Source: Macrostomum lignano
Taxonomy: Eukaryota
Assembly (NCBI GenBank): GCA_002269645.1
Contig: NIVC01000814.1
Location: forward strand, 376,806-440,805
Direction: 5' to 3'
DNA length: 64,000 bases
Numbering within the stretch: position 1 is the stretch's first letter; every line of letters begins with the position of its first letter. Position numbers and translations under genes: made by a program. The notes under the pieces are model-generated. The model worked only from the letters and a program-made list of their open reading frames with translations. It did not search any database and was not told the DNA's origin. Below are positions 4,912 to 41,352 of the stretch, one piece after another.

Positions 4912-7252
4912 TCAGTCGGTCGAGTCCACCTCTCGTCTTCGGCGTCTTGTCAGGCCCATCAGCTTGAATAGGTGGCTTCTCTGGCGCCGGTGACCCTGCT
5001 GCTGTTTTTGTTGCTGCTGCTGCTGCTGCCGCTTTCTGCTTGTGGCGGCGCTCAAATTGTCGGCTGCCGCCAGATCGACGCAAGTCAGAGTGGCCATAGA
5101 CGGATTTGAAGTGTCACAATCGGCCTCGCTTATATCCGTCAGGCTCTGTCGCAGGCTGGAGTCAATTTGGCCTAGCAGTTGGTCGCAAGTTCGAATCCTA
5201 TTAACAGTCAGGTTGGCCAGCTCCGAGGTTGTTAGAATCGATCGAATCCGATCGAGTTGAGTCAGGCAGCTCTGTTGGATTTGTCGAATTTCAATCAAAT
5301 CGTTACCTGGCTGATCCTCAAGTGTCAAAGGAGACAGCGGGGCAACTCCGCTGCAGGTGAAAAATGCCGAGTCCATTGAGGCTGCCGTGTCCTTGCAGTT
5401 GGATTGAGTTTCCACTGTGCTATTGGAGAGATCCGGAGACTGATCAATGATTGCTGCTTGCTGGTTCGAGTTCGCCTGTTGGTCAAGCAGCAACTGCCAG
5501 GCTAGGGAGGCGTCTGTTGATGAGGCTGCTTAGGGATGGGGCGGATATGGGAGTAATGAGTTACCAACGATAGAACCAAGTTGTCCTTTAGGGGCGTAGC
5601 CATAAGGAGCGGAGCAAGTGATGGTGCACCTTAAAATTAAAAACCCTATGGCTTGGGCAGGCATAAACGACAATTGCCATGCGCTTGATCCCCCGCCCCA
5701 CCTTGAGGCCTGTTATGGAAATCAATAATTTTGCTTCCGCGGGCGCCAAAACGATCCAGTGCCGGCGGCGTTAAAATCGAGTGTCTGTGGCGCCAAAATG
5801 ATCGAGTGCCAGTGGCGCCAAAACGATCCAGTGCCTGTGGCGCCAAACTGATCGAGTGCCTGCGGCGTTGAAATACATGTAAGTGCCAGTGGCGCCAAAA
5901 TGATCCAGTACCTGCGGCGCTAAAATGATCGAGTGCCTGCGGCGTTAAAATGATCGAGTGCCTGCGGCGCCAAAACGATCGAGTGCCTGTGGCGCCAAAC
6001 TGATCCAGTGCCTGTGACGCCAAAACGATCGAGTGCCTGCGGTGCCAAAACGATCGAGTGCCTGCGGTGCCAAAACGATCGAGTGCCTGTGACGCCAAAA
6101 CGATCGAGTGCCTGTGACGCCAAAACGATCGAGTGCCTGTGGCGCCAAAACGATCGAGTGCCTGCGGCGTTGAAAAAAGTGCCAGTGGCGCCAAAATGAT
6201 CCAGTGCCTGCGGCGCTAAAATGATCGAGTGCCAGTGGCGCCAAAACGAGTGCCTGCGGTGCCAAAATGAGGGCAAACACCACCGATTCCCAAAAATAAT
6301 ATGTAGAAATTTAGTCGTGTAATGCGCTCGTAAAATTCTCGGCTTCGTCCCGCACCATAAAATCGATTGCGACATCCTTGGACATGTATGTCATGTACCG
6401 ATCCTTACTGCAGAAGCTTTGGCACCCCTAAGTGCTTGCCATGCAGTTTCCATTGTACATATCATAGCCCATTCAAATGAAGGGTCTTCCCCCAGCTGAC
6501 TCACGCAAATCCCAAGTCTCAGTAGCTGTTGTCTCCTCCAGCTGCTGCTGTTGCACCGACTGATTCAACCGACGCCGATGCAGTGGTCGCTGCTGCTGAA
6601 GTCGGGCCGGTTTCCTACTGCTGGCCTTGCCACAGGCGCGCTTTTGAGCTTGATGATGCAGCAACAGTTGAGGCCTTCGACTGGGCGAATCCAGGTCAGT
6701 CTTGGCCGCGCTCTTCGTCGACAGAACCATCGGCACCGCCCGCTTAGCAGCCAGGATTGTCGCTTCTGCTCTACAGTAGCAACAGACGCTGTAGCTTATC
6801 GCGGACACAATGTCCTTTTCCGTTAGCTCATCCGATGATGTAGCCAACTCTGCTAGATTGTCATCCACAAACACTCGCTGAGTTGAGTAGCTCAACATCC
6901 GACTCTCCTGATTGGCCAGATCCACTCGGCAGGCAGCAACGGGAAAGCCGAAATGCCTGACTGGCGACAGAGGTGCTCGCTCGTCCCAGCTGCTGGTGAA
7001 CTCCTGCAAACTGTGGTAGGTCAGCTGACTCGACAGCGACTGACCTGCCGTCGTTGATGCCACCATAGCAGCATTGACGACATGTCCTGAGCACAGCTGC
7101 TGCGCCACAGAGTCGCACAGATGAGGCAATAGCTGACGCCGATTCAGCGTTAACTGATGGCGTCTTTTCGACCTGATGAATCCGAAACGGCGCTTCCCCG
7201 TGTTGCCGCGTACATGATGAAGCAGACAAGCGGAACCAACGATGCTTTTCAT
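4912..7252 (-). CDS. Uncharacterised two-exon protein (about 454 aa)
   Basis: Exons 7252-6505 and 5528-4912 join in phase 1 via GTGAGT...CCTAAG. Exon-like GC content, polyQ tracts, basic C-terminal RRRRRE; no family recognised. Confidence 0.6.
5745..6270. repeat. About 25-bp minisatellite (TGCCTGTGGCGCCAAAACGATCGAG) in orphan-gene intron
   Basis: Direct tandem repeats; explains overlapping ORFs 5646-6375. Confidence 0.9.
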
Positions 7253-7681
7253 TGTATTGAGGCGCGGTTGAAAAACTATGATTTGTTTATCAGCATATTC
7301 AACACCAATTAAATTTGTAAAGTGGAAGCTGATAGGTGCAAACCATATGTTTTCATATACACGTAATATAAAAAAGAATGTTAAATTTCCATGAGCTCTG
7401 TATCTAATTCTAGTTTTATCTTATTTAATCATCAATACACAGCTTCTGAGCACAATTCTAACGAAAGTGTACCATAGACATGGAAGTTCTGCATCATTAA
7501 CGTACTAAAGTCTTTTTATGATCTGTTAGGCCATAAAGTCAATATTTGATTTCGCACACAGCCACAATTCACTCAGTGCAACAGAGAATATTCAGCTTGT
7601 CTCCTTGCTTCCCAAGCAGTACCTAAGTACATGTAGCATCATCGCCATCAATTATGAAATAAAATCATCCGACTACTCTAG

Positions 7682-8032
7682 ACCGCTCTCCTAACTGCTC
7701 TCTCATTGGCTGAGCTAGATTGGGCCTGCCCCTCTGGACTGAGTTTCGTCCTTCTAACTTTGACCTCTCTCCTAACTGCTCTCTCATTGGCTGAGCTAGA
7801 TTGGGCCTGCCCCTCTGGACTGAGTTTCGTCCTTCTAACTTTGACCTCTCTCCTAACTGCTCTCTCATTGGCTGAGCTAGATTGGGCCTGCCCCTCTGGA
7901 CTGAGTTTCGTCCTTCTAACTTTGACCTCTCTCCTAACTGCTCTCTCATTGGCTGAGCTAGATTGGGCCTGCCTGAGTTTCGTCCGTGTAACATCGACCT
8001 GTCTCTTTACTGCTCTCTTATTGGCTGAGCTC
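7682..8032. repeat. 81-bp tandem repeat with CCAAT boxes, about 4 copies
   Basis: Unit contains ATTGGCTGAG and ATTGGGCC; same family as 20870-21190. Confidence 0.9.
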
Positions 8033-9287: not shown

Positions 9288-9344
9288 CTGGAAGCGAGCC
9301 GACAAGTTTTAAGATAATCTAGGTTAATTAGAAACATTATTGCT

Positions 9345-11400: not shown

Positions 11401-11543
11401 ATTTTGTGAAGAGAGTATGAGTATATTTCTATATGAGTATATAAATATTTAACGCAGAGCAAATAGGGCTTTCAAAGTTTCGAATGCGTGATAAATTCTC
11501 CTTAGATATATTAAATTACAAAGATTAATCCACATTATTACTA

Positions 11544-12017
11544 TTAGTAGCGTCGATAGGACTTGCTAGCGGATCCACTGGAATTGTCTCCGTTATTCCT
11601 ATCGAAATGACGACTGTCTCGTTTAACACCGGCGGCAATATTTCTCGACGGTTCGTTGCGTTGATAATAATCGCCGTCTCGACTGTCGCCTCTGTGGTTG
11701 CCATGGTAACGCTGGCGCTGCTGATGCCGCCGACCCTCGCTAGTCCAGTCGTACTGCCGCCGGGGATTCCGGTACCAGCGGGTCACCACGGGGGGTGTTG
11801 GCGATTTCTCGCGATTCCAACAGGCCTGAAAGTCCGGATCCTGCTCGGTGAACCGGTGCTGGAATTTCATCTCTAATTGGAGGACGCTGAGACCGCCGGA
11901 TGGCGGAGCTGCGGCTGCTGCGGTTGACTGCTCAACAGCTGTCTTAGAAGACTCTGCTGCCTCTGCTGTTGCCTGAGTGGAACTTTTCTCAGCTGCAGCT
12001 TCTTCTGGCATTTTCAT
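11544..12017 (-). CDS. RAMAC: RNMT-activating mini-protein (RAM/FAM103A1) homolog
   Basis: LEMKFQHRFTEQDPDFQ...PPVVTRW core followed by an R/N/Q/Y/G-rich tail as in RAM; ATG at 12017 (second ATG at 12011). Confidence 0.75.
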   Translation of the reverse strand: MKMPEEAAAEKSSTQATAEAAESSKTAVEQSTAAAAAPPSGGLSVLQLEMKFQHRFTEQDPDFQACWNREKSPTPPVVTRWYRNPRRQYDWTSEGRRHQQRQRYHGNHRGDSRDGDYYQRNEPSRNIAAGVKRDSRHFDRNNGDNSSGSASKSYRRY

Positions 12018-12439
12018 CAATAAATGAGTTGATTGCTTTATTAGGCCAGCCAAGTTGGTCTAGCGCTTCAAGTTAAGCAGAGCTGGCCGCGGTTAGTGCG
12101 CAGCTTAACTATCGAAAATTTGACTGCCTAAACTAACGCTTAACCTAAACTCTTATTAAATAAAACAAAACCTATCCTGTATCTAAACTATATCATAAAA
12201 CTAAACTAAACCGAATCTTAAACCCTAATCTAAACCTTTAATCTGGGGGTCGGCCAATTTCGGCCCACGAAGCCTCTCTATCCCGCCCTCGGGTCCTTTG
12301 AAACTTCACAATAGCAATCCGACCCGCTCAAGGTTTGTGTCTCTTCTCAGCTCTCTTCTCTCGTCTCTTTTTTCTTTTCTCCGTTCTCTTCTCCCTGCAC
12401 AGCCTGTGATAGCATGTCAGCGGAATGGGCCACCAATAG

Positions 12440-13570: not shown

Positions 13571-14259
13571 CAATGACTTTCCCACTCTCGTCAGACCGTA
13601 TACAGCACATTCTCATTATGTTTCGGCAATGAAAGCGTAAAGACAGTTAGTTTATAAAATAAAATTATGTTCAACTCTGTTGAAAAATTATTTACGCACG
13701 TAGCTATACTTTCAGTTTTTGCAGCGCGCAGGTAGCCAAAAACTGATTGAAATATATAGGGGAGTTGCCTGTGTAGATGATGCACACACACAACTAGATG
13801 GCAGTAATAATAATATTAATAATAATAATAAAAATTATACAGAAATTCAATTTATCCAACGGCACAGGAACACCTACAAGAAAAGCACATGTCAATACCA
13901 ATAAGAGAAAATTACTGGATAGATGAAAAAATCACAAAACTGTAGTAGTAAGTTAGGCATATAAATAGCAAAATACAGAGATAAATATTATAGCATCTAC
14001 TTAGAATTTCTGCATGCACTTATTAATTTAAGAATCGAAATGAAGTGTGTGCATTTAAACACATTGAAAGCAGTTTAAGTTGAAAAAAAGCATTATATTT
14101 TTCTCAAAATTTATAAAAAATTATAAGCAGACTGTTTTCTGCTATTTGGAAACATAAAAAGTCACAACCAAAAATTATTTTTGTCTAGTTTTTGATGTTT
14201 TGTATATTAAAACAGAAGTTGATGTACTATTAAATTACTTTATTTAAGGACTCGGATAG

Positions 14260-14269
14260 TCTGTCTTTG

Positions 14270-14326
<57 letters not shown>

Positions 14327-14353
14327 TTCTGTCTGTCTGTCTGTCTGTCTACC

Positions 14354-14419
<66 letters not shown>

Positions 14420-14421
14420 CC

Positions 14422-14454
<33 letters not shown>

Positions 14455-14457
14455 TAA

Positions 14458-14511
<54 letters not shown>

Positions 14512-14573
14512 CCTGTCTGTCTGTCTGTCTGTCTGTCTGTCTGCCTGTCTGTCTGTCTGTCTGTCTGTCTACC

Positions 14574-14615
<42 letters not shown>

Positions 14616-14617
14616 CC

Positions 14618-14663
<46 letters not shown>

Positions 14664-14695
14664 CCTGTCTGTCTGTCTGTCTGTCTGTCTGTCTC
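14260..14695. repeat. (GTCT)n microsatellite with ACCT interruptions
   Basis: Directly visible. Confidence 0.98.
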
Positions 14696-16158: not shown

Positions 16159-16869
16159 GATTGCGTGTCCGATAGAGTTTGCACTGAGCATGAATAAAAT
16201 AAAGAAATTGTTTTTATCGATACTACTTACTATGATCGCTTAAGTCAGTAGTATAAAACTAACTGAAAAAGAAAGAAATTTAGAAAAAAATACAAAAAAA
16301 CAAGAAGCTACGGGTTAATTCTATTCTGTTGAAACTGAACTTTTAATTTTAAACTTGTTTTATATAAAAATAGCAGCATGGTGATTTTTGATAAAATGTT
16401 TACAGGGTGATCTTTTCAGTTTTAGCAGGACAAAAATAGACTGAAAATACGAGTGTACATACACTGACACGATCTATCAGATTATTATATCAAATTAGGC
16501 AAATCTGCAAATAAAATGTTTATAGAGAAAAAAATATTCTTTTTAAAATGTGCTTATTAAAGACAGTGTTCAACTTTGAGTAGGCGATAAAGAAAATGCA
16601 TAATAAAATTGTTTATCCAGACCGTATCATACTGGGCACAATAGGAATTTTGGCAATGCTTCTTACCGCTTATTGGTTGCAAACTATGATCGAATTATAA
16701 AATCAAGTTATGCAGACGAATAACAGGACTGCTGGGATGACTGAACAGAAAATACAAACTAAAAGATAACTTTAATTAGATCAAACAGACCTAAATACTA
16801 GGATTTATTGTAAGAGAAATTTGCAAATCGAAAAAATAAACAGATAAAATTATTAGATTTACAGATTTT

Positions 16870-17374: not shown

Positions 17375-17914
17375 CTATTTTCTAGACGAAGCAACCCGAT
17401 CCAAAAAGGCGGCATTTGCCTGGCGCATTTGATCACGCCGTTGTTCAGTCGATAATTGCTGCTTTGGCGGCTCCTTTGATGTCTTATCAGCTTCGCCAGA
17501 CAGTGGTTTACCGCCGGACATAGATTTAATATTTTTCGTTGCTCTCTCGTATTTAGCCAGCTTCCTACGCTTCATCTCGGCCTCTTGCTGCTCAATAAAA
17601 GACCGACGAAGACTGCCGTTTGATGTTTCACCGCCGCCGCCGCCTAATTGTTGAGTGAAAGGCGCCGGTCTATTAGCTTCTACATAGGCGGCTAATTGTT
17701 GGCTCTCCCGTTCAGCTATTTGTTGATTTAATTGTCGCCGCTCACTATTGGCTGGCAGTACGCTGTAGCTGCCCCGATATTCTAACTGCCTGCCCCCTGC
17801 CTGGCGCTGATTGGCTAATTGATCTGATTGGCTGCCGTCAGGATTGGCTGGGTTAACACCGCTGCTACGATTATTGTAAATGCCTGTTGGCTGAGCGTTG
17901 GAATCGCTGTACAT
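17375..17914 (-). CDS. EPSTI1: EPSTI1-like coiled-coil protein
   Basis: YRGSYSVLPANSERRQLNQQIAERESQQL...LGGG resembles the EPSTI1 core. ATG at 17914 is 2 nt after a strong acceptor (GTACACAG|CA-ATG). Confidence 0.6.
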   Translation of the reverse strand: MYSDSNAQPTGIYNNRSSGVNPANPDGSQSDQLANQRQAGGRQLEYRGSYSVLPANSERRQLNQQIAERESQQLAAYVEANRPAPFTQQLGGGGGETSNGSLRRSFIEQQEAEMKRRKLAKYERATKNIKSMSGGKPLSGEADKTSKEPPKQQLSTEQRRDQMRQANAAFLDRVASSRK

Positions 17915-18977: not shown

Positions 18978-19129
18978 ATTTGCTTTTTAAAGAGTTTTGG
19001 TTGACATGCATTGGTCGGGTGGCGATGGTTTTTAATAATCACTGAATTTAATGTACAGATTTAATTTAGACCAGTTTTATAAAACTTTACAAGCTTGATT
19101 TTGACTATAGATTACCGCTAGATTAGACT

Positions 19130-20869: not shown

Positions 20870-21190
20870 TGTCTAACTTTGACCTCTCTCCTTACTGCTC
20901 TCTCATTGGCTGAGCTAAATTGGGCCTGCCCTCTAGCCAGACTGTGCTTTGTCCGTCTGATTTTGACCTCTCTCCTCACTGCTCTCTCATTGGCTGAGCT
21001 AAATTGGGCCTGCCCTCTAGCCAGACTGTGCTTTGTCCGTCTGATTTTGACCTCTCTCCTCACTGCTCTCTCATTGGCTGAGCTAAATTGGTCCCCTAGG
21101 CTGGGTTTCGTCCGTCCAACTTTGACTTCTCTCCTTACTGCCCTCTCACTGGCTGAGCTAGATTGGGCCTGCCCCTAGACTGAGTTTCGT
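20870..21190. repeat. 81-84-bp CCAAT-box tandem repeat, second locus of the 7682-8032 family
   Basis: CTGCTCTCTCATTGGCTGAGCTAAATTGGGCCTGCCC shared with the 7.7-kb array, same orientation. Confidence 0.9.
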
Positions 21191-22044: not shown

Positions 22045-24208
22045 TTATTGAACTTTCTTATCCTTAACAAGGCCATTTCCGCCGTTATCGCCAGCGGTTG
22101 CTGCGGCCGAGTCTATCCAATGCTCCATGGCGCATTTCTTTGGAAACCAGCCCCTAGAAGCGGAAGCGTCTCTCGCAGACTGAGACTGCTCATCAGCTAG
22201 TAATAGCTGACCGTAGAGCCATTCGCCGTGAGCTCGAGTTACAATCAGTCGCTGACCAGGCGACAATGACAATCGTTTCTCTTCGATCCAGATTGAGCAC
22301 GGCTGGCAACAGGCGGTTCTCAAGCCGAAGCTAATAGGAAATCTGGTACCAGTGTAAGCTCGAATAACGCTCGCTAATACAGCCGTACTGGCTTTATGCG
22401 CCTTTTGCAGCACCTGCTCCTTTGTTAAATCGTATTTGCCGCAATCGGGTGCCAACGGCCAATCGTCCAGGCCGTTGCCAACTGGTCGGCCGGACCAGTT
22501 TATCACCTGCCGGGTAGGAGGGAGATGGCATCTATTCTCATAGGCGATTGTGCCTAACAGGTACATTTACATATAACTGGGGTCTAACAGGGTAACAGGT
22601 GTCTAACAGATACATTGGTATCTAACACGTGTCTAACAGATACATTGGTATCTAACAGGTGTCTAACAGGTACATTGGTATCTAACAGGTGTCTAACAGG
22701 TACATTGGTATCTGACAGGTGTCTAATAGATACATTGGTATCTGACAGGTGTCTAACAGATACATTGGTATCTGACAGGTGTCTAACAGATACATTGGTA
22801 TCTAAAAGGTGTCTAACAGATACATTGGTATCCAACAGGTGTCTAGCAACTAACACACTTTGAGCATAACACGCGTCTGGTTTGTGTGTGTGTGTGTTAT
22901 TTTGCGTGTTAACGTTAACAATCCAGAAAAGTCCAACATGCAACTTAATTACCTGCTTAAAGTTTCTCATCCTACCCAAATCGTAGGGATATTGAAACTT
23001 CGGCGGCTGTCCAGCCTCATCAATGGACAAGTGAGCAGTCATGGAGTCGTGCCGGCATTCTAATCGATAATCGGCTTTATCGCAGATCCAAAACTCGATA
23101 CCAGTTCGATTGCGTAATATCGATTTTAGCTGAACAAAGAACAGAGCGCCAACTGCTATGGTGGTGCCTAAAGCGAGGCCCAGACAGAAGAATGCTAACA
23201 ATACCTCCCACAGGTTCATCATAGCGTAGTCCTCGGTCGGGAACTCAGAGTCCTGATGATAGAACGGATAGAACAGAGTATAATAGACGCAGTAGGACAC
23301 AATGACAGCCGAGTGCAGGCAGCCTAACGGGGCGAACAATAGAAAATAGGTGAACTGAGCGTGATTCCGGTGACCGACGCAGGCGTTGATCCATGGACAG
23401 TGATGATCCATCTTGGTGACGCAGCGGCCGCACCTGCTGCAGTGATGCGATCTGCAAATTTTATAATTACAGGTATTTTAGTGTCGCTTTTTTATCAGCA
23501 TAGGTTGCAATTGTTATTATTTTATATATTCTCTCGAGATGAATTATATTGCAATAATCTCGTACATTATATTTTAATCCTGATCATTTCGATCATTTAT
23601 AATTATTATCGTCTGGCTGGTCCCATATACTCGACTCTTACACCATTGATCATCAACATTATCATTGGCAACACCATCACTATCACTGTCATTACCAGTA
23701 TCATCATCATCGAAATCATCATTATCATCACACTTATCATCATTAAAATCATCACCCCACCATCTTCATCATCATCACCACCACCATCATCACAATCATA
23801 GTATTAATAATAATTTTCATAACTATAATACTCATGCCTTAAAATAATTTCAAAAGAAAAGTACTCAGCTTGTAAGTTAGTCAATAAACCAACGAAGGCC
23901 ACTCACCTAGGAGCTTTGTATCCCTTACAGATAGAGCACCATTGCAACAAAGATTTCAGTTGTTGATCGTCTGTCAAATCGATCGGTCTCCAGCCAATAG
24001 GCACAAAACCGGGACCCCAGAACATGGCCTTCAAATAGGTGGACATCACCAGGTAGTATTCAAGCGCGTATACGGCTACGTGCAGCAAATTGCTGTGCGA
24101 TTTCAATGGCGGCCACCATATTAGCAGCAGTCGACTAGTATAGATAGCTATATAGAATATGATAAATAGGGCGATTAAGGGGCCCCAGTGCAGGACCCGG
24201 CGAAGTCT
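22045..24208 (-). CDS. ZDHHC6: Palmitoyltransferase ZDHHC6 (DHHC plus C-terminal SH3-like domain); ATG not found in frame
   Basis: Exons 24208-23907, 23451-22953, 22506-22045 are phase-consistent. Motifs LHWGP, GPGFVP, YKAPRSHHC, KMDHHCPW, YPYDLG, VINWSG and GEWLYG...RGWFP. Confidence 0.93.
22575..22850. repeat. 30-bp minisatellite in ZDHHC6 intron
   Basis: AACAGGTGTCTAACAGATACATTGGTATCT tandem copies. Confidence 0.95.
23620..23800. repeat. Degenerate (CAT)n microsatellite in ZDHHC6 intron
   Basis: Directly visible. Confidence 0.85.
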
Positions 24209-24249
24209 CTGCTTAGCTGTGCGACAGGAAGAGTCCAGAAAAAGAGTTA

Positions 24250-24670
24250 TGCGTGTGGAGTAGTGGCTAGTCTTTGTTGACTGTAGCTGCGTGTGGAGTA
24301 GTGGCTAGTCTTTGTTGACTGTAGCTGCGTGTGGAGTAGTGGCTAGTCTTTGTTGACTGTAGCTGTGTGTTGGGTGGTGGCCAGTCTTTGTTGACTGTAG
24401 CTGTGTGTTGGGTGGTGGCTAGTCTTTGTTGACTGTAGCTGTGTGTTGGGTGGTGGCCAGTCTTTGTTGACTGTAGCTGTGTGTTGGGTGGTGGCCAGTC
24501 TTTGTTGACTGTAGCTGTGTGTTGGGTGGTGGCTAGTCTTTGTTGACTGTAGCTGTGTGTTGGGTGGTGGCTAGTCTTTGTTGACTGTAGCTGTGTGTTG
24601 GGTGGTGGCCAGTCTTTGTTGACTGTAGCTGTGTGTTGGGTGGTGGCCAGTCTTTGTTGACTGTAGCTGT
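24250..24670. repeat. 38-bp minisatellite abutting the ZDHHC6 acceptor
   Basis: AGTCTTTGTTGACTGTAGCTGTGTGTTGGGTGGTGGCC tandem copies. Confidence 0.95.
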
Positions 24671-27767: not shown

Positions 27768-28569
27768 TGCTTTCTCTTTGAAGAAAATTGATCGTTCAAA
27801 CAAATATTTATATAACTGCTGATCAACTCGTGAAAAATGGTATCATGAAACATTCAAAATATTGTGTCAGTCAGAGTTTACGATTTTAAATTTGGATACA
27901 AAGCTAGCTAAACAATAACAATTTTAAAAAAACACGAAGACATAAGGCGTACTTTAACTCATAAATTCGCTTCAAATTTAATTTATTAACTAAACAAATA
28001 CAATGCCAGCGAAAAAACAAACAAATATTTACAATTTGTAACAATTAAAAAATCAATCTAATAATTATAACTATTATTACCAAATATATAGAGACACCAT
28101 AGAAAATTTGCACAACATTCAATAAGTAAGAAGATACAATGAGAGTAACTATTAAACAGACTGATTGATATCTTACAGTGATTTTTTTAATCCAGTAGTA
28201 ATAGGACAATATAAAGTATTGTACAATAATAACTAGTGTGTATAGTAGGGTAAAATATGTGGACAATCTGATTGAAAAATCGAAGGAATTTAGTCGATCA
28301 TATAACACGATGAACAAGTATTACTGTGTAATTATGCATCTGGGTTGCATATGCATCATTATAATGAGTACAAAAACCAGTAAATTACCAAGCAAAACCA
28401 AGGATTACTAGAATTAGTATAAATGTAGCAACAAAATTGATCGATAGCAACGTATAATTTTTGTTACTAACACAACACCGATTCGTTAAGTTGAATGCTA
28501 CCCGTTTTCGTGCTTGTAAGAATTCTTCAGAATGTACTATAAAGCGATGTTATGAGCGATTCTGTGCTG

Positions 28570-29439: not shown

Positions 29440-30558
<1,119 letters not shown>

Positions 30559-31295
30559 ACTAAATCACTCTTGTTTGAATAAAATCATGCAAATTATCAA
30601 TAAAAAAGTATAGATTCATAAAGCATAATTGTAACTACTTTATACTTGACCTATCTAAGTATGAAATTTGATTACATCAAAACTATTATTAAATTCTAAC
30701 AGTAATAAAAGCAAAATAAATTGAAATCAAATAAGTTACACAATCAATCAGAACACAAATACTGGACACTGTCTTTATTTACTTAGCAGATTAATAAGAA
30801 ATCAATATTTTAAAACGAATTATAAAAAAATCTTATTTAACACGACAACTACATGTTGATATCACAAAATGGCACAAATGTCATTGTGCCTTACAGTAGT
30901 ATAATTGGACATGTAAACGACACAACCAGGAAGAAGAGTAGTTAGCTAGTAGTATGAAGAGACATGAAATTCATATGTACATTGCAGTACATTATGAATA
31001 AGAATTTAAGCAGATAATTTAACTAACAAAAACAATTATTCCAAGACTCGAAAATTAGTATAGGAAAGATTTTTAAGACATTCAGATTAAAATGTACCAA
31101 AAACCCTACTATAACCAACAGCGATGACCAAAAGCGAAAAATAACAATGCAGCCTAAGCGTCGCAAATTAAAACTACTCCTATGATTTAAGGCGAAAATT
31201 TCTATTCTTACAGAATTTTGAACCAATTTACCATAAACTATGACCCAACAAGTATCATAGAAAACTTACTATGCCGTTGCTACGGCAATAAAACA

Positions 31296-32000
31296 ACAAA
31301 GCAACTGAAGCTGCGGTTGCTATGGAGATAATGGCAAATAACTGCATAGCAACTAAAGCTGCGGTTGCTATGATGATAATAACGCACAACTGCATAGCAA
31401 CTAAAGCTGCGGTTGCTATGGAGATAATAGCAAATAGCTGCATAGCAACTAAAGTTGCGGTTGCTATGGAGATAATAGCAAATAGCTGCATAGCAACTAA
31501 AGCTGCGGTTGCTATGGAGATAATGGCAAATAACTGCACAGCAACTAAAGCTGCGGTTGCTATGATGATAATAACGCGTAACTGCATAGCAACTAAAGCT
31601 GTGGTTGCTATGATGATAATAACGCGTAACTGCATAGCAACTAAAGCTGTGGTTGCTATGATGATAATAACGCGTAACTGCATAGCAACTAAAGCTGTGG
31701 TTGCTATGATGATAATAACGCACAACTGCATAGCAACTAAAGCTGTGGTTGCTATGATGATAATAGCAAATAGCTGCATAGCAACTAAAGCTGCGGTTGC
31801 TATGGAGATAATAGCAAATAGCTGCATAGCAACTAAAGCTGCGGTTGCTATGGAGATAATGGCAAATAGCTGCATAGCAACTAAAGCTGCGGTTGCTATG
31901 GAGATAATAGCAAATAGCTGCATAGCAACTAAAGCTGCGGTTGCTATGGAGATAATAGCAAATAGCTGCATAGCAACCAAAGCTGCGGTTGCTATGGTTA
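31296..32000. repeat. 48-bp tandem repeat, each unit with a 9-bp hairpin stem
   Basis: CATAGCAAC-TAAAGCTGCG-GTTGCTATG in each of about 14 units. Confidence 0.95.
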
Positions 32001-32094
32001 TAAATTAAATCGCGCATAAAGTCATAGACTGCAAAGCAACTAGTATTCAATTGAGGGCATAGTAACTAACGGTTGCTATGCAAACAGGCCGCAA

Positions 32095-35000
32095 CTACAA
32101 AAACGTTGTATCCTCAGTAAAAGCCCCAGCAAATCGATAGTCATCCCTGGCCAATACGCAGTACAATCGCTGAGGTGTCGGTCGCGAACCCGGCCCGGGT
32201 CGAGGCGCCACGCATCGTAGCAGCATCTCCTTGGCTGTGAATGGCGGGAATTTGCCTCCGCTATTAGTAGCAGAAGATGATTCCGGCAATGTTGCAGATG
32301 TTGCAGAATTGGCGGCAGCGGCGGCAGCAGCGACAGCGGCCGAGGCAGCGTGACTTTCAACAAACATTCGTTGCAAAGCGCTGCCAATAGGGCCTCGAGA
32401 TGCGCCAACAACCGGCACCTCCGGTTGCCTGAGCAGATCTAGAAGGAATTGCCTAGTAACTGGGTCAGCCGAGTAAGAGGAGTCCTTGGCAACGCCGGTA
32501 CAGCAGGAGTTGAACTTGAACAGTAGGGAGCGCAATCGAACCACCTGAAGCAGTATGAGGTGTCTAAATACACAGTGACAAAACGAAACGCAAGGAAACT
32601 TTCTATTTTGGCTGGCTGAGTCTCAAAAAATATAAATGCTATACAAAAGTGCAATGCCCACTTAGCGCTATTAATAGTTTTGAGAAATAGTTACCGTGTG
32701 CTATTTTTACACATTTCCTTACACTCGCCCTCTGGTTCGCTGTTATGATGGGGTGGAGCAGGGTAACTGACTAACTAACTGACTAACTGACTGACTAACT
32801 GACTAACTAACTGACTAACTGACTAACTAACTAGCTAAACATCTAACTAAATAACTAACTGGTTAACTAACTCTGTGGTAAAGTACTAACTGACCGACTA
32901 ACTGACTGACTGGCGTGACTGAATGAATAACAAACCAATTAAATTAGATGGCTACAACTTATCTCATACTCAGATCCACAATATCATAACAAATTACCTG
33001 CAATTCCAGGTAAGCAATATCATTAACTAAGCTTTCGTATCGATCAGGATTAGCCGTCCGCTCTCTCGTAGCGTCGCAGGCTTTCTCGCAAGCGGCCTCC
33101 AGAGTGCGCAGAAACTTGGGCGCCGATTCCGACAGCATAGCTGCCTCTTCGGCTGGCAAATCCACTAAGCTAGCCAGACCGTCCAGCACAGCATTGGGTA
33201 GCAACAGCTTAGCAACCTCGGCCGGCGTTAAGCCGCTTAATTGTTGGAGTATCTTTTCTACTTCTTTAGTATCGTCAAACAGACGCCGTTGCAGTCTAGC
33301 CGGTATGGGCTTGGCAAGCTGCCAGGTTTCTAGCCAGATATTGCCCGGCAGTTGCATTCTTGCTGACAATTGGCCGTTGGAGAAATCTCGGGGCGAATGC
33401 CAGCGTACAAAGTCTTCCAGGCAGCAGCCCGGGTTCGCAGCCTGGGCGAGAGGACGGGTGGGAGATTATCGGGGGTTGATAGGGGAGATTATCGGGGGTT
33501 GATAGGGGAGATTATCGGGGGTTGATAGAGGAGATTATCGGGGGTTGATAGGGGAGATTATCGGGGGTTGATAGAGGAGATTATCGGGGGTTGATAGGGG
33601 AGATTATCGGGGGTTGATAAGGGAGATTATCGGGGGTTGATATGGGGAGATTATCGGGGGTTGATATGGGGAGATTATCGGGGGTTGATAGGGGAGATTA
33701 TCGGGGTTGATAGGGGAGATTATCGGGTTGATAGGGGAGATTATCGGGGGTTGATATGGGGAGATTATCGGGGGTTGATAAGGTAGATTATCGAAGTTTT
33801 GGCTAGAGAAGATCATCGGGGGTTGATAGCGATTTCCAATGGGGATCAAAAGCGATTTCCAATAAGGGATCAAACAGCGATTCCCAATGGGGATCAAACA
33901 GCGATTTCCAATGGGGATCAAAGGGCAATTTCAGTGTGGGGATCAAAAAGCGATTCCCAGCGTGGGATCGAACCCCAGACCAACCTTAAAGGCCTGCATA
34001 TCGCTGAGCAGTGAGCTGCTCTGCATTCGAGCCCGCAGCGCGGCGGCCTGAGAATCGGTGCCCAATTTAGCCAGCAATTCGGTGTGCTCTTCCAGACTGT
34101 CCTCGGTCATTGGCGGCGCCTGTTGCGTAGCCGGAACCCACAGCACTCTATCGGGCCGTTTCAACAGTCGAACGGGTTCAGCAGCCGAAGCCGACGAAGA
34201 TGTCGAGGCGACGACGAATTGTCGAAGCCGACCGTCTGGCTGATGATCGGGCTGCATCGGCTCCTCTTCGCATTCGAAGAATTCGTCCTCTCCATCCTCT
34301 CCGTCAACGCTGACGTCACCTTCCATGTTGACGTCATTGTTGGATTGTTGTTCACTCGAAGCTGTGACGGACTCCGACTCTTCGCGTTGCTGTACAGTTG
34401 CCATGGAGGAGGTTTTCTCCCTAGAAATACGCAGATCGACTCTTTTAGCGGTACCAAATAGGCATAGGCATGCCCTAGTGCATAGTTGAGTAGATACTCG
34501 AAGATGGCAGGAGTAGATACTCGAAGATGGCAGGAGTAGATACTCGCGCAAGAGTAGATACTCGAAGATGGCAAGAGTAGATACTCTAAGATGGCGAGAG
34601 TAGATACTCGAAGATGGCAAGAGTAGATACTCGAAGATGACAAGAGTAGATACTCGAAGATGACAAGAGTAGATACTCGAAGATGGCAAGAGTAGATACT
34701 CTAAGATGGCGAGAGTAGATACTCGAAGATGGCAAGAGTGGATACTCGAAGATGGCAAGAGTAGATGCTCGAAGATGACAAGAGTAGATGCTCGAAGATG
34801 ACAAGAGTAGATACTCGAAGATGGCAAGAGTAGATACTCGAAGATGACAAGAGTAGATACTCGAAGATGGCAAGAGTAGATACTCGAAGATGGCAAGAGT
34901 AGATACTCGAAGATGGCGCAAGAGTAGATAATCGAAGATAGCAAGAGTAGATGGCAAGAGTAGATACTCGAAGATGGCAAGAGTAGATACTCGAAGATGG

Positions 35001-38000
35001 CGCAAGAGTAGATACTCGAAGATGGCAAGAGTAGATACTCGAAGATGGCGAGAGTAGATACTCGAAGATGGCAGGAGTAGTTACTCGAAGATGGCAAGTA
35101 GATACTTAAACAATGGCACCCGAGCATGCTAAACATTAATGACAACTTTGAATGTACTTTTTTTACATTTTTAAAAAACCATTCAATGCCTACTATAAGT
35201 AACAAACCTAGCCAGTTTTCGCCCGATACACAATTGCAACATCTGCAATTTCTGGTGCAACAGCGAGGTGCCCAAGTCTGGCGGCGTCTCAACAATGTCC
35301 TCTTGACACTGGCTGTCTTCCGTCTCGGCAGAAGGCGACGCCGTGGCAGCCGCTGGCAACGGACAGGAGTTCTCCCAGCGATAGCGCAATTCCAGCACCA
35401 CCTCTTGCCACAGGTGAGCAACAGCGTGAATACCGCTGGAGTGAGTGTGATTCAGTGTGGCCACGGCCAGGGTCAGACGGTGGGCAAGGGAGCCCAGTGG
35501 GGCGCATTTCAGATCGCGAGCCAACTTCTGAGCTCGCTCGGAGTACTGCTGAGGCTGCTGCTGAGTCGCATCTGAGGGGGGGGGGAAGCACGTTTCATAG
35601 TCTATCACATACCGGATGCTTTAGTGAACACTGGCTACCACATCCCGGATGCCTTAGTGGACATCGGCTACCACATCCCTGATGCTTTAGTGGTCATTGG
35701 CTACCACATCCCTGATGCTTTAGTGGTCATTGGCTACCACATCCCTGATGCTTTAGTGAACACTGGTTACCACATCCCAGATGCCTTAGTGAAAATCGGC
35801 TACCACATCCCAGATGCCTTGTGGTCATTGGCTACCACATCACGGATGCTTTAGTGGACATTGGCTACCACATCCCTGATGCTTTAGTAGTCATTGGCTA
35901 CCACATCCCTGATGCTTTAGTAGTCATTGGCTACCACATCCCTGATGCTTTAGTGAACACTGGTTACCACATCCCAGATGCCTTAGTGAAAATCGGCTAC
36001 CACATCCCAGATGCCTTGTGGTCATTGGCTACCACATCCCTGATGCTTTAGTGAACACTGGTTACCACATCCCAGATGCCTTAGTGAAAATCGGCTACCA
36101 CATCCCGGATGCCTTGTGGTCATTGGCTACCACATCACGGATGCTTTAGTGGACATTGGCTACCACATCCCTGATGCTTTAGTAGTCATTGGCTACCACA
36201 TCCCTGATGCTTTAGTAGTCATTGGCTACCACATCCCTGATGCTTTAGTGGACACTGGCTACCACATCCCTGATGTTCTAGTTGACATTGGCTACCAGCT
36301 TGAATGTTGCAAATCTCGCACATAACGTTCTCCATCATAAACTCCAAAACAAACCTACTCGACACTCCTGCCGCATCGGGGAACAAAAAGTGCAGCAAGC
36401 TGTTCAGCTGGGCTTCGCTCAACGGAGCCGATTGGTCGCTTCGGACAGACAGCTTGGAAGTGGCCCGGCGAACCACACCGGTGGCAGCGTCGGTCATGCT
36501 GGGCACTCGGCTGCCAGTCAGACGGTCCAGAGCTCTGCAGAGTGGAAGTTTTGTATGGCAATTTTTAATGGTACATTTGTATCTTGTATACAGAGATTTA
36601 TAATATGGAAATAGGGTAGCAAGATGTGGTCAAGCAACTAGGGATAGAGCTGAGAGGCTGGCACAGCAACTGAGAACGGAAATAACAGGTTTGCCCAGCA
36701 AATGAGGATGGAGCTGAGAAACTGATCGAGCAACTGAGGGTGGATCTGAGAGGCTGGTTCAGCAAATGAGGATGGAGCTGACAGGCTGGTTTAGCAACTG
36801 AGAACGGAAATAACAGGTTTGCCCAGCAACTGAGGATGGAGCTGAGAAACTGATCGAGCAACTGAGGGTGGATCTGAGAGGCTGGTTCAGCAAATGAGGA
36901 TGGAGCTGACAGGCTGGTTCAGCAACTGAGAACGGAAATAACAGGTTTGCCCAGCAACTGAGGATGGAGCTGAGAAACTGATCGAGCAACTGAGGGTAGA
37001 TCTGAGAGGCTGGTTCAGCAAATGAGGATGGAGCTGAGAGACTGATCGAGCAACTGAGGATGGAGCTGAGAGACTGATCGAGCAACTGAGGATGGAGCTG
37101 AGAGACTTATCGAGCAACTGAAGATGGAGCTGAGAGGCTGATCGATCAACTGAAGATGGAGCTGAGAGACTGATCGAGCAACTGAGGATGGAGCTGAGAG
37201 ACTGATCGAGCAACTGAGGATGGAGCTGAGAGACTGATCGAGCAACTGAGGATGGAGCTGAGAGACTGATCGAGCAACTGAGGATGGAGCTGAGAGACTG
37301 ATCGAGCAACTGAGGATGGAGCTGAGAGACTGATCGAGCAACTGAGGATGGAGCTGAGAGACTGATCGAGCAACTGAGGATGGAGCTGAGAGACTGATCG
37401 AGCAACTGAGGATAGAGCTGAGAGACTGATCGAGCAACTGAGGATGGAGCTGAGAGACTGATCGAGCAACTGAGGATGGAGCTGAGAGACTGATCGAGCA
37501 ACTGAGAATGGAGCTGAGAGACTGATCGAGCAACTGAGCATGGAGCTGTGGAGGCTGGCCCAGCAACTGAGCATGGAGCTGTGGAGGCTGGCCCAGCAAC
37601 TGAGCATGGAGCTGTGAAGGCTGGCCCAGCAACTGAGCATGGAGCTGTGGAGGCTGGCCCAGCAACTGAGCATGGAGTTGTGGAGGCTGGCCCAGCAACT
37701 GAGGATGGAGCTGGGAGGCTGGCCTAGTAACTGAGGATGTAGCAGGGAGACTGGTCCAGCAACTGAGGATCTGAAAGGATGATTGCCCATAATCCAAGAC
37801 CATCGCGCAGAACTATCAAGACAACACAAACCATCGCGCAGAACTATCAAGACAACACAAACCATCGCGCAGAACTATCAAGACAACACAAACCATCGCG
37901 CAGAACTATCAAGACAATCACAAACCTACCTAGAAGCAGTAGCCGACTCCAACGCGGCTCCATCGCTGCTTTTGCCGCCGCCGCCGCCGCCGTCGGCAGC

Positions 38001-41000
38001 GCCACCAGACCCGGTAGAGGTGCCGCCAACACCAGCGGCAGTCGGCGACGAAGTAAAGAGCGCAGCTAGCAGGTCGTGAACAGTCTCTCGTCGAGAGCAC
38101 AGTCTCAGCAGGCGGCCTAAACAGTCGGTCAATCTGCACAGCGCGTCGTCAAGAAATCTCGCCCTCAAAGTCCAAACTGGCGCGTGCAACGGATCCAAAT
38201 CAGTGTAGGACTCCGTATCCACTACCATCTCTTCGGCTAGGCGAGGCCAAACGGCGGCTAATTGCAATTCGCTGATTGGCTCCTCGCACGGACCAATAGG
38301 AAGCCGAGCTGGCAGGTCCAATTCGCGTTGCTGCTGATTGCGCCGATGACGAAGCGTGTCGGGCAGGGGACTCAGACAGGCTAACAGGCGGTCGGAGAAC
38401 TGGCTTAGGCTGTAGCTCAGTCGAATAGCTGCGCTAATTGATGGCCCGTTAGAGGACGAGAATTGGCTGCCGGACTGCACTGCGGGACAGGCCATTCGCT
38501 GTCTAAACATATCGATAGCGCCTTGCAGGTGCCTGTAGTGCCTGGGGATTTTGCACAGCTGGGCTATTTCGAATCGGGTGCGGAGCCCGGAGCCGAGGGC
38601 CTGCGGCGAGGATTTCAAATTGGCTGGAGTAATTAGTTATGCTAATGCGCTATTGTGCAGATGCAGATAATGGATGCGCTTTCAGTATTAAGCAGTGTAT
38701 GATCTGTAATAGAGTTGGAGGCTGAAAACCTGAGATCTAGCTAGCAACTGAGGATGAAGCTGGGAGGCTGGCCCAACTCGACACTTTATGAGGATGGCCC
38801 AACAACTGACACTTTGCAAGGCTGGCCCAGCAACTGAGGATCTGGGAGGCTGGCCCAGCAACTGAGGATCTGGGAGGCTGGCCCAGCAACTGAGGATCTG
38901 GGAGGCTGGCCCAGCAACTGAGGATCTGGGAGGTTGGCCCAGCAACTGAGGATCTAGAAGGCTGGCCTAGAAACTGACACTTTAAGAGGCTAGCCCAGCA
39001 ACTGAGGATCTGGGAGGCTGGCCCAGAAACTGACACTTTAGGAGGCTGGCCCAGCAACTGAGGATCTGGAATGCTGGCCTAGAAACTGACACTTTAGGAG
39101 GCTGGCCCAGAAACTGACACTTTAGGAGGCTGGCCCAGCAACTGAGGATCTGGAATGCTGGCCTAGAAACTGACACTTTAGGAGGCTGGCCCAGAAACTG
39201 ACACTTTAGGAGGCTGGCCCAGCAACTGAGGATCTAGAAGGCTGGCCTAGAAACTGACACTTTAAGAGGCTAGCCCAGCAACTGAGGATCTGGGAGGCTG
39301 GCCCAGAAACTGACACTTTAGGAGGCTGGCCCAGCAACTGAGGATCTGGGATGCTGGCCTAGAAACTGACACTTTAGGAGGCTGGCCCAGAAACTGACAC
39401 TTTAGGAGGCTGGCCCAGCAACTGAGGATCTGGGATGCTGGCCTAGAAACTGACACTTTAGGAGGCTGGCCCAGAAACTGACACTTTAGGAGGCTGGCCC
39501 AGCAACTGAGGATCTGGGAGACTGGCCCAGAAACTGACACTTTAGGAGGCTGGCCCAGCAACTGAGGATCTGGAAGGGTTGCCCAGCAACTGAGGATTTG
39601 GGAGGCTGGCCTAGAAACTGACACTTTAGGAGGCTGGCCCAGCAACTGAGGATCTAGAAGGCTGGCCCAGCTACTAAGGATCTGAGAGGGCTTCCTATTA
39701 ACTGGAGGTCTGGAGGGCGGCCTAATAACTAAGGATCTAGGAAATCTCTATTGAATTTCAGATGATACAAATAGCAGTATGATTTAAATTTAAATATTTC
39801 TACTGAACACAGCATATAATAGAACGCAAGATTCGAGCCTAGGACCTACAAGTAAAAATGCTTACCTGGCCAAAGTACAGCCTCCGATCGGGCCGGCCAA
39901 CCTGCAGAAAGATCGGCAGGTGGCAGCCGGAATTGTGCGCAGTGATACACAGGCTGCTTAGCAACAGTCGCAATCGACTCTCATTGCACACTGTCTGGTC
40001 TTGGCTCGGCTTCACTACAATCAGCTCGCGTAGGCCGAACCAGCGTGTTAAACAATGAGCAACGCTGGGGAAATCGTTATCGGATGAGGCAATCTGATGC
40101 AGCACTGGCGGCCAAAAGGTCTTGCTGTCGCTGGCCGGAGGCTGCTCAGCTGCTTTCCCAGCTTCATCTGTCCCAGCTAGATCGGGTTGATCTTCTTCGC
40201 TAGGCTTTGGAGGCTGAACCTGTTTAGTCGGGATTTCAAGTATAAGCTGTATTTGAATTGGAACATTTAAAATATTGACTCAACTGGATGGGATTTGAAC
40301 TATACTGGATGGGATTTGAACTCAACTGGATGGGATTTGAACTATACTGGATGGGATTTGAACTATACTGGATGGGATTTTAATTTTTATGGACGGGATT
40401 TGAACTTTACTGGATGGGATTTGAACTCAAATAAATGGGAGTTGAACTCAACTGGATGGGATTTGAACTCAACTAAATGGGATTTGAACTTAACTGGACT
40501 GGATGGGATTTGAACTATACTGGGTGAGATTTGAACTATACTGGATGGATTTGAACTATACTGGATGGGATTTTAATTTTTATGGACGGGATTTGAACTT
40601 TACTGGATGGGATTTGAACTATACTGGATGGGATTTTAATTTTTATGGACGGGATTTGAACTTAACTAGATGGGATTTGAACTCAACTAAATGGGATTTG
40701 AACTTAACTGGACTGGATGGGATTTGAACTTAATTGGATGGGATTTGAATTCAACTGGATGGGATTTAAACACAACTGGATGGGATTTGAACTCAACTGG
40801 ACGGGATTTGAACCTAACTGAATGGGATTTTAACAGAAGTGGGTGGAAGTTGAACACTTAATAGGATTTGAACTTAACTGCGTGTTTGAACTTTACTGGA
40901 TGGGATTTGAACTCAACTGAATGCGATTTAAACTTTACTGGATGGAATTGGAACTTAACTAAATCACCTACTTGACAATGATGCGTCAATCTAAACTCGC

Positions 41001-41352
41001 AGTCCATGTACCGTACACTACAAGACTGATCTTTCCAAGTGTGCTGCTGCCGATCCAAGTGCCTATCGGTGCCGAATCGTCTAGTGGCGTTGCTGCCTGC
41101 GGCGGCCGTGGCGTGACGCGAGTCGGCCATTCTCTCAGCCTCAGGCACCGATTCTAAGCCCGTGCCACCGGACTTCACGGAGAACCGACCGCCGCCATCC
41201 ACTTTCCATTCGTTGAATACCTCTTCTAACTCGGACATGAACTGCTCCCAGTCTGATGCGCTGGTGAAATCCGTGATTTCAAAAACGTCACCTTCTTCCT
41301 CTATAATGCTGGTCTCCGTTGTCAGAGGCGGAGACTGCGGAAATGTAGCCAT
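32095..41352 (-). CDS. RAB3GAP1: Rab3 GTPase-activating protein catalytic subunit (about 1100 aa)
   Basis: Eight phase-consistent exons: 41352-40972, 40246-39866, 38600-37930, 36534-36359, 35571-35208, 34420-33985, 33441-32998, 32544-32095. Motifs FEITDFTSASDWEQF, DNDFP, RWFGLRE, DLDPLHAPVW, HLWQEVVLELRYRWE, SDMQAFKAANPGC and YRFAGAFTED. Confidence 0.95.
32762..32910. repeat. (CTAA/CTGA)n microsatellite, RAB3GAP1 intron 7
   Basis: Directly visible. Confidence 0.9.
33462..33960. repeat. 23-bp (GGGGAGATTATCGGGGGTTGATA) and 24-bp minisatellites, RAB3GAP1 intron 6
   Basis: Direct tandem repeats. Confidence 0.93.
34490..35100. repeat. 23-bp minisatellite (GAGTAGATACTCGAAGATGGCAA), RAB3GAP1 intron 5
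   Basis: Direct tandem repeats; creates the false read-through in ORF 33943-35421. Confidence 0.95.
35600..36295. repeat. 33-bp minisatellite (GGCTACCACATCCCTGATGCTTTAGTGGTCATT), RAB3GAP1 intron 4
   Basis: Direct tandem repeats. Confidence 0.95.
36640..37920. repeat. Compound minisatellite (32-bp GAGCAACTGAGGATGGAGCTGAGAGACTGATC and variants, plus a 31-bp unit at 37790-37920), RAB3GAP1 intron 3
   Basis: Direct tandem repeats. Confidence 0.93.
38740..39700. repeat. About 28-bp minisatellite (CAGCAACTGAGGATCTGGGAGGCTGGCC and variants), RAB3GAP1 intron 2
   Basis: Direct tandem repeats related to the intron-3 array. Confidence 0.93.
40280..40960. repeat. 21-bp minisatellite (GATGGGATTTGAACTATACTG), RAB3GAP1 intron 1
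   Basis: Direct tandem repeats. Confidence 0.93.

Follow-up and report, generated by a model that had tools for sequence, protein, structure and literature searches.

A stretch of 64,000 nt from the genome of the flatworm Macrostomum lignano was analyzed computationally (contig NIVC01000814.1 of assembly GCA_002269645.1, Mlig_3_7; positions 376,806 to 440,805 of the forward strand). This whole stretch is called the window in the following. It represents the last 64 kb of the scaffold, and its end coincides with the contig end. All positions are window coordinates, to which 376,805 has to be added to obtain those of NIVC01000814.1. The window harbors a cluster of ten housekeeping genes that are all encoded on the minus strand, and the point at issue is whether these genes are transcribed together, in groups, or one by one. 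M. lignano has a single 35-nt spliced leader (SL), CGGTCTCTTACTGCGAAGACTCAATTTATTGCATG, which ends in AUG; 30% of its genes are trans-spliced and 15% are in operons (PMC8629364). Our analysis indicates that the cluster most likely consists of a small number of polycistronic units (about two to four), and not of ten separate genes.

Gene order, gene identities and copies of the locus

GenBank calls of coding sequences (CDSs) and exact mapping of proteins to exons placed nine annotated genes and one unannotated intact open reading frame (ORF), RAMAC, between positions 41352 and 4912 (Table 1). A preliminary description, made from the sequence alone, had reported ten genes in one orientation over 36 kb, and this arrangement was confirmed: the CDS-to-CDS gaps measure 712-3067 nt, and there is no opposite-strand gene within the cluster. 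Since the CDS accessions PAA76550-PAA76558 run consecutively, nothing is annotated between the cluster genes on either strand. If orientation were random, ten out of ten genes would point the same way with P ~0.002. Beyond the orphan gene at the end of the cluster, a convergent ankyrin-repeat gene on the plus strand marks the downstream boundary.

Pfam and PDB searches confirmed seven of the gene names proposed earlier. The Pfam domains found were Rab3-GTPase_cat in RAB3GAP1 (3e-50), TRAPP in TRAPPC3, Peptidase_A22B and PA in SPPL2, DHHC in ZDHHC6, Snf7 in CHMP1A (1e-12), RAM in RAMAC and a methyltransferase domain in METTL5. The identity of METTL5 is also backed by the PDB search, in which query residue 10 aligns with residue 6 of the human protein. 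Two further names could not be secured in this way: the Deltameth_res match of the prag01-like protein is weak (24.8 bits, under the Pfam cut-off of 27 bits), and the label 'EPSTI1-like' is unverified, with no Pfam match at E<=1. The orphan protein matched no Pfam family.

Three more copies of the locus are present in the assembly, on contigs NIVC01000126.1 (contig 126), NIVC01001614.1 (contig 1614) and NIVC01004279.1. Gene order is the same in all of them, and nucleotide identity is 92-99%. The copies are recent duplicates, and their synteny is therefore not independent evolutionary evidence. A CDS for RAMAC is annotated in two of the paralogous copies, where the contig 126 annotation is a truncated 75-aa product.

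Table 1. Genes of the cluster, in the order of transcription, and the convergent neighboring gene. Spacers run from each gene to the next one listed, with the length after subtraction of tandem arrays in brackets; the contig that bears each locus tag is given in brackets
Gene	Position	Strand	Features	Spacer to next gene (nt)	Locus tag
RAB3GAP1 (Rab3 GTPase-activating protein catalytic subunit)	41352-32095	-	8 exons, 1091 aa, complete CDS with own ATG, first gene in cluster	1509 (811)	Mlig018442g1 (126); Mlig018442g2 (NIVC01000814.1)
TRAPPC3	30558-29440 (CDS)	-	3 exons, 178 aa	1596 (1596)	Mlig032831g1 (126)
SPPL2-type signal peptide peptidase	27836-25902	-	single exon, own ATG 27767, GenBank CDS 5'-partial, longest ORF in region	1666 (1126)	Mlig015429g1 (126); Mlig015429g5 (1614)
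ZDHHC6-type palmitoyltransferase	24235-22045	-	3 exons, 429 aa, without own ATG	3040 (1981)	Mlig015429g2 (126); Mlig015429g6 (1614)
prag01-like	18977-18627	-	single exon, 116 aa, ATG 18977	710 (629)	
EPSTI1-like	17914-17375	-	single exon, 179 aa, GenBank CDS 5'-partial	1186 (761)	Mlig015429g3 (126); Mlig015429g8 (1614)
CHMP1A (Snf7 family)	16155-14905	-	3 exons	2890 (1412)	not annotated (126); Mlig029636g6 (1614)
RAMAC (RNMT-activating mini protein)	12011-11544	-	intact 155-aa ORF, ATG 12011, no CDS annotated in NIVC01000814.1	2256 (974)	Mlig015112g1 (126); Mlig024045g1 (1614)
METTL5	9287-8475	-	single exon, 270 aa, without own ATG, GenBank CDS partial	1045 (752)	Mlig015112g2 (126); Mlig024045g2 (1614)
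Orphan protein	7417-4912	-	2 exons, 508 aa annotated (5'-partial), 453 aa from ATG 7252, last gene in cluster		Mlig026529g1 (126); Mlig026529g3 (1614)
Ankyrin-repeat gene	<1-3088	+	called gene, 760 aa, Ank_2 and related domains, convergent with orphan		

Splice acceptors, start codons and leader-derived bases

The acceptor motif published for the M. lignano SL is [T/C]TNCAG, and only 44% of SL sites matched it (PMC8629364). In the window, the ORF of METTL5 starts directly after the consensus acceptor cgcTTCCAG/ (TTCCAG at 9293-9288; the slash marks the splice site here and below). The first exon base, 9287, is in frame with the SL AUG. Because this ORF has no ATG, opens at the acceptor and encodes an N-terminus that matches human METTL5, the SL AUG appears to be the only plausible initiator. 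Cheng et al. (2006, J Biol Chem) are said to have described such a supply of the start codon by the SL for some genes, as a flatworm feature. The ORF of ZDHHC6 is likewise devoid of an ATG and starts at 24235, right after tttttCTG (CTG at 24238-24236), a sequence that can be read as a partly overwritten CAG acceptor. If METTL5 and ZDHHC6 do depend on the SL AUG, reporter or rescue constructs of both genes would have to supply a start codon.

Candidate acceptors were also located at the other downstream genes. At SPPL2, splicing at ATCAGCAG/ would make 27815 the first base of the exon, and the SL AUG would then be in frame; TTTCATG/ at 27843 is an alternative possible site. CHMP1A has TTCATG (16194-16189) in place of TTCCAG, with the first exon base at 16188 and again in frame with the SL AUG, and prag01 has TGCATG (19010-19005) in place of TTCCAG, with the first exon base at 19004. 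TRAPPC3 is preceded by an exact 7-nt SL suffix, TTGCATG (30592-30586), 27 nt upstream of its ATG, which gives a putative SL site at 30585. A 16-nt SL-like stretch, AACTCATTTATTGATG (12030-12015), ends 3 nt before the ATG of RAMAC (first exon base 12014). It is the best SL-like match of the window, with 2 edits relative to the last 16 nt of the SL and 0.1 such matches expected by chance. The orphan gene has the SL-like TATTGATG at 7437-7430. For EPSTI1-like, the acceptor could be ACAG/ (17918-17917) or a site just past the ATG (first exon base 17911).

At the inferred sites of SPPL2 (27815), ZDHHC6, CHMP1A (16188), RAMAC and METTL5, the SL AUG is in frame with the long ORF. At those of TRAPPC3, prag01 and the orphan gene, it opens an upstream ORF (uORF) of 3-7 codons (7 in TRAPPC3) that ends before the gene's own ATG. 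The CDSs of SPPL2, ZDHHC6, EPSTI1-like, CHMP1A, METTL5 and the orphan gene are annotated as 5'-partial in GenBank. Some of these begin one codon past a genomic ATG (CHMP1A 16155, EPSTI1-like 17911), and others 7-12 nt downstream of the inferred SL site (SPPL2 27836, orphan 7417).

Short matches to the SL are not informative on their own. Suffix matches of at least 6 nt occur 15 and 21 times on the two strands of the window (~16 expected), and loose approximate matches occur 22 times (23.5 expected), which is chance frequency in both cases. We therefore relied on the position of matches and on differences between copies, with the RAMAC outlier as the one addition. For the same reason the SL-like matches at TRAPPC3 and the orphan gene carry less weight. 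Taken together, trans-splicing with the SL is suggested for at least seven of the nine downstream genes, namely TRAPPC3, SPPL2, ZDHHC6, prag01, CHMP1A, RAMAC and METTL5. This assignment is based on ATG-less ORFs at acceptors, SL scars that differ between copies and 5'-partial CDSs, which are indirect but convergent. For EPSTI1-like and the orphan gene the evidence is weaker. RNA-derived contigs (Logan) for the cluster proteins did not turn up.

The preliminary description had named other acceptors, TTTAG/ for TRAPPC3, ACAG/ for EPSTI1-like and CTCAG/ for CHMP1A. All three are present where they had been placed, give or take 1 nt, but the main sites of SL addition probably lie elsewhere: in each case the SL AUG would be out of frame and would open a uORF of 7-34 codons overlapping the real start. 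The sites inferred here lie 5-27 nt upstream. TTTAG/ is nevertheless the acceptor used in fused UniProt models (see below). The ATG in the string TTATTCATGCTCAG, quoted in the same place, is probably an SL-derived assembly artifact where the true acceptor CAG should be.

The last point rests on a comparison of the copies. For prag01, ZDHHC6 and CHMP1A, the acceptor is the only place at which near-identical copies diverge, and they do so toward the SL suffix. The prag01 acceptor reads aaTGCATG/TCAACC in the window and in two further loci compared, and aaTTCCAG/TCAACC in the contig 126 copy. At ZDHHC6, the window has tttttCTG/GAC, a paralogous copy tttGCATG/GAC, and a UniProt model TLFQ/DSS. At CHMP1A, ttaTTCATG/CTCAGT in the window corresponds to tttTGCATG/ in a paralogous copy and to ILFQ/LSANS in a UniProt model. 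The Q in the ZDHHC6 and CHMP1A models implies CAG at the acceptor. SL-derived bases replace the acceptor AG at prag01 (19005-19010), ZDHHC6 (24236-24238), CHMP1A (16189-16194) and RAMAC (12015-12030, all on the minus strand), and similar scars are possibly present at 30586-30592 and 7430-7437. The extent of overwriting varies between copies, from ..TTGCATG to partial forms such as CTG and TTCATG.

Both DNA reads and RNA-seq were used when the Mlig_3_7 assembly was polished with Pilon (PMC5730564). The SL-like bases are most likely scars of this polishing, left by RNA-seq reads that carried the SL. The chimeric CTG at ZDHHC6, which is neither genome nor SL sequence, points to per-base consensus voting and not to a biological event. 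If the acceptors were indeed overwritten by SL-bearing reads, the scars provide indirect experimental evidence for trans-splicing at their exact positions. They may also partly account for the low proportion of SL sites that matched the acceptor motif in the published survey (PMC8629364). Scars of this kind would create spurious genomic ATGs and destroy AG acceptors, and could thereby mislead splice-motif statistics, gene prediction and the design of guides or primers in M. lignano, which serves as a transgenic model. The SL bases that appear to have been written into Mlig_3_7 at acceptors are the most useful by-product of the analysis.

Spacers, transcriptional units and flanking sequence

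Spacer lengths (Table 1) were taken from the stop codon to the acceptor. They are upper bounds on the intercistronic length, as 3' untranslated regions are included and only the tandem arrays detected by Tandem Repeats Finder (TRF) were subtracted. These arrays make up 37% of the spacer length overall and 0-57% per spacer. The TRAPPC3-SPPL2 spacer has no array at all. In M. lignano operons, the spacer mode near 100 nt is visible only after repeat subtraction, and the operon threshold was set at a repeat-adjusted length of 1 kb (PMC8629364). The same study reported that repeats inflate operon spacers and that RNA-seq transcriptional units (TUs) tend to break in repeat-rich ones. Judged by the repeat-adjusted limit of 1 kb, five of the nine spacers are short enough outright (<=974 nt), one probably is and three probably are not, all lengths being upper bounds.

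The arrays bear on transcript ends as well. Neither AATAAA nor ATTAAA occurs between the stop codon and the minisatellite of RAB3GAP1, EPSTI1-like and RAMAC, and the transcripts of these three genes must therefore enter the arrays. These hexamers are found at about chance rate in this AT-rich DNA, so that they fix neither the 3' ends nor the true intercistronic lengths. In the RAB3GAP1-TRAPPC3 spacer (30586-32094, 1509 nt), 698 nt are a 48-mer minisatellite (31300-31997). One tandem-repeat family with a period of 81-84 nt occurs in two spacers (7681-7973 and 20871-21178) and hence represents a dispersed minisatellite family. A (GTCT)n microsatellite of 109 units (14259-14694) is situated 210 nt past the stop codon of CHMP1A, right after the only ATTAAA nearby. 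Repeats are not confined to the spacers: each of the seven RAB3GAP1 introns (32545-40971; 453-1395 nt each) consists to about 80% of its own distinct minisatellite, with periods from 12 to 33 nt, leaving a few tens to a few hundred nt of non-repeat sequence per intron, and the orphan intron (6504-5526) contains a 25-mer minisatellite.

Evidence for joint transcription came from the published annotation. The underlying pipeline clustered TUs at 95% identity under a common name prefix and then used SL and poly(A) signals to cut them into genes (PMC5730564). Locus tags were retrieved by exact protein look-up; the prefix denotes the TU cluster, and gN a gene cut from it. From non-homologous neighbors that have a common prefix and are numbered in the order of transcription, we infer one TU that was cut into genes, and thus a shared primary transcript. 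SPPL2, ZDHHC6 and EPSTI1-like show this pattern, and Mlig015429g7 on contig 1614 is presumably prag01. The g1/g2 pattern of RAMAC and METTL5 recurs under two independent prefixes.

A further link is given by two UniProt entries, A0A1I8JC39 (1267 aa) and A0A1I8GW07 (1269 aa), which are fusion models of RAB3GAP1 and TRAPPC3. Both fusion junctions were reproduced in the window, where weak GT donors at 32104 and 32098 are joined to the acceptor TTTAG/ (30560). As a side effect of these models, a protein cluster at 90% identity mixes the unrelated RAB3GAP1 and TRAPPC3. In a 2025 survey of parasitic flatworms, chimeric gene models were taken as signs of polycistronic pre-mRNA, at intergenic distances of up to several kb (PMC12582326).

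In total, there is some evidence (distance, TU prefix or fused model) that links the two neighbors at seven of the nine junctions. For TRAPPC3-SPPL2 and CHMP1A-RAMAC no such evidence was found, and both spacers exceed 1.2 kb after repeat removal. Positive evidence favors two units, SPPL2-ZDHHC6-prag01-EPSTI1-like, in which prag01 is probably included, and RAMAC-METTL5. RAB3GAP1 and TRAPPC3, EPSTI1-like and CHMP1A, and METTL5 and the orphan gene are probably also joined.

The 10 kb upstream of RAB3GAP1 (41353-51352) contain no called gene in three copies of the locus, and this region is the candidate promoter region of the first unit. It includes a 2.1-kb satellite with 92 copies of a 23-nt unit (42864-44989) and a degenerate mariner/Mos1-type transposase (48030-49418) with HTH_48, Transposase_1 and DDE_3 matches in Pfam over two ORFs. 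We also asked whether conservation between copies could reveal promoters. Identity is 99.4% in the 1 kb upstream of RAB3GAP1, compared to ~96% for most spacers. This is uninformative, because the high-identity tract extends through 6 kb of RAB3GAP1 including introns and another such tract covers ZDHHC6. Indeed, identity between the contig 126 copy and the window is patchy, amounting to ~99.8% over 35350-42350 (the 5' two-thirds of RAB3GAP1 plus 1 kb upstream) and over 22045-24350 (ZDHHC6 with introns), and to ~96% outside these tracts, the SPPL2 coding sequence included. This pattern suggests gene-conversion tracts between duplicated chromosomes.

Elsewhere in the window, a plus-strand gene may start near 60326, where an SL-like match was found (3 edits over 16 nt; ~2 such matches expected by chance); a nearby plus-strand ORF (61748-62287) has a weak match to a TBP domain. 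Exact database look-up returned no record for the plus-strand ORF 60744-61574, nor for SPPL2 translated from its second ATG. A protein search with SPPL2 gave matches from M. lignano and vertebrates only, suggesting that the database lacks any other macrostomid proteome. Scans of the window for Rfam families and tRNAs gave no matches.

Interpretation of the cluster and comparison with known operons

We consider it probable that the cluster is composed of a few adjacent operons that are resolved by SL trans-splicing, roughly [RAB3GAP1, TRAPPC3], [SPPL2 ... CHMP1A] and [RAMAC, METTL5, orphan]. In such units, RNA polymerase II would read through the spacers, minisatellites included. Each upstream cistron would be cleaved and polyadenylated, and SL trans-splicing would cap each downstream cistron at an acceptor of the [T/C]TNCAG type located 0-30 nt before the coding region. 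For METTL5 and ZDHHC6 the terminal AUG of the SL would be the only possible start codon, and it would also be in frame with the long ORF of CHMP1A and RAMAC and, at one of the candidate sites, of SPPL2. The preliminary description had left the choice between one polycistronic unit and a few adjacent ones. In this hedged form the reading fits both the organism and the evidence. A single ten-gene unit is not supported, given the separate prefixes and three long spacers, two of which nothing links.

Several observations weigh against these adjacent operons. Three spacers still measure 1412-1981 nt after removal of tandem repeats and are thus over the published 1-kb limit; a search of the long spacers for dispersed repeats found none except the 81-nt family, and none at all in two of these three. 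RAB3GAP1, TRAPPC3, CHMP1A and the orphan gene bear separate TU prefixes, and all transcript evidence is second-hand, coming from annotation, locus tags and polishing scars. In addition, the RAB3GAP1-TRAPPC3 fusion models use weak donors (GTTTTT and GTAGTT) and could be artifacts of the gene predictor. The TU assembly tolerated up to 1000 multimappings per read (PMC5730564), so that reads from dispersed minisatellites could have bridged neighboring genes artificially. For the reporters tested in M. lignano, up to 2 kb of sequence was enough to drive expression (PMC5730564), and spacers of 0.6-2 kb, far over the operon-spacer mode of ~100 nt, could be long enough for promoters. Finally, ~60% of the trans-spliced M. 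lignano genes are outside operons (PMC8629364).

The last four points speak at the same time for ten independent monocistronic genes with their own promoters in the 0.7-3 kb spacers. In this case the SL would trim the outrons, the co-orientation would be accidental, and the TU joins and fusions would be artifacts caused by gene prediction, read-through or repeat reads that map to many places. The strict co-orientation of the ten genes argues against such a coincidence, as do the three genes that lack a polyadenylation hexamer before the downstream array. Chance bridging also hardly explains why RAMAC and METTL5 appear as g1 and g2 under two prefixes on two contigs, and why SPPL2, ZDHHC6 and EPSTI1-like are ordered on two contigs. 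Independent genes are thus the least likely of the three readings, and we regard them as improbable.

At the other extreme, all ten genes could form one operon, with a promoter upstream of RAB3GAP1 and a primary transcript of >=36 kb that runs through nine minisatellite-rich spacers, the separate prefixes being assembly breaks at repeats. The unbroken co-orientation between a 10-kb gene-free region and a convergent gene would agree with this, as would the trans-splicing evidence for at least seven of nine downstream genes and the linking evidence at seven of nine junctions. It is also known that TUs split in repeat-rich operon spacers (PMC8629364) and that chimeric models in other flatworms span several kb (PMC12582326). 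However, the two junctions without linking evidence are both longer than 1 kb (TRAPPC3-SPPL2, 1596 nt, with no tandem or dispersed repeat found; CHMP1A-RAMAC, 1412 nt after TRF subtraction). TUs do cross other repeat-filled spacers (SPPL2-ZDHHC6 and RAMAC-METTL5), and therefore repeats alone do not explain the TU breaks. Moreover, the largest operon found genome-wide by the published criteria has nine genes (PMC8629364). A single operon seems unlikely, though it is a better candidate than ten independent genes. If true, no larger operon would be known from a flatworm and it would rank near the top among animals, and spacers in metazoan operons could be at least ten times as long as the classical ~100 nt. 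Should the cluster form one transcription unit, or almost one, the size range of flatworm operons would be extended, and the polymerase would read through kilobases of minisatellite between cistrons. This would bear on the constraint on operon spacing and on the neutral accumulation of repeats inside operons.

SL trans-splicing and operons are already established for M. lignano and the locus is publicly annotated, so the phenomenon itself is not new. This particular locus was not found in the literature searched, and its Mlig identifiers are absent from the full text and supplements searched. The adjacent operons that we favor are closest to those published for the same species and assembly, and the cluster agrees with most of the operational criteria by which these were defined. 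Shared features are the 35-nt SL ending in AUG, the [T/C]TNCAG acceptors (TTCCAG at METTL5 and prag01), conserved housekeeping genes, spacers inflated by tandem repeats, and TUs cut into.g1/.g2 genes (PMC5730564, PMC8629364). Published operons mostly comprise two or three genes, with a maximum of nine in two cases (PMC8629364). The cluster differs in that ten genes would exceed this maximum and that three spacers stay above 1 kb when only tandem repeats are subtracted. The earlier remark was that ten genes would be large for an animal operon; the published flatworm maximum would be exceeded only by one.

Operons of parasitic flatworms mostly consist of two genes, again with a maximum of nine, and their fused gene models parallel the RAB3GAP1-TRAPPC3 fusions in UniProt (PMC12582326). 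Under the 300-nt threshold of that survey, none of the nine spacers would be accepted. The SL2 operons of C. elegans (2-8 genes) are alike in that they contain co-oriented, unrelated housekeeping genes whose downstream cistrons are SL-capped in a manner coupled to 3'-end formation upstream. They differ in having spacers of ~100 nt and a dedicated SL2, compared to 0.6-2 kb after repeat removal and one SL here. With 629 nt for the shortest repeat-adjusted spacer and the single SL of M. lignano, the cluster falls outside the SL2 type (PMC8629364; PMC12582326). If the ten-gene reading were right, the closest analogue would be the transcription units of kinetoplastids, which are likewise long co-oriented arrays of unrelated, trans-spliced genes with kb-scale spacing and with promoters confined to the array ends. 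Kinetoplastid units have tens to hundreds of intron-poor genes and universal trans-splicing, whereas in M. lignano 30% of the genes are trans-spliced, and the cluster described here comprises ten genes with cis-introns.

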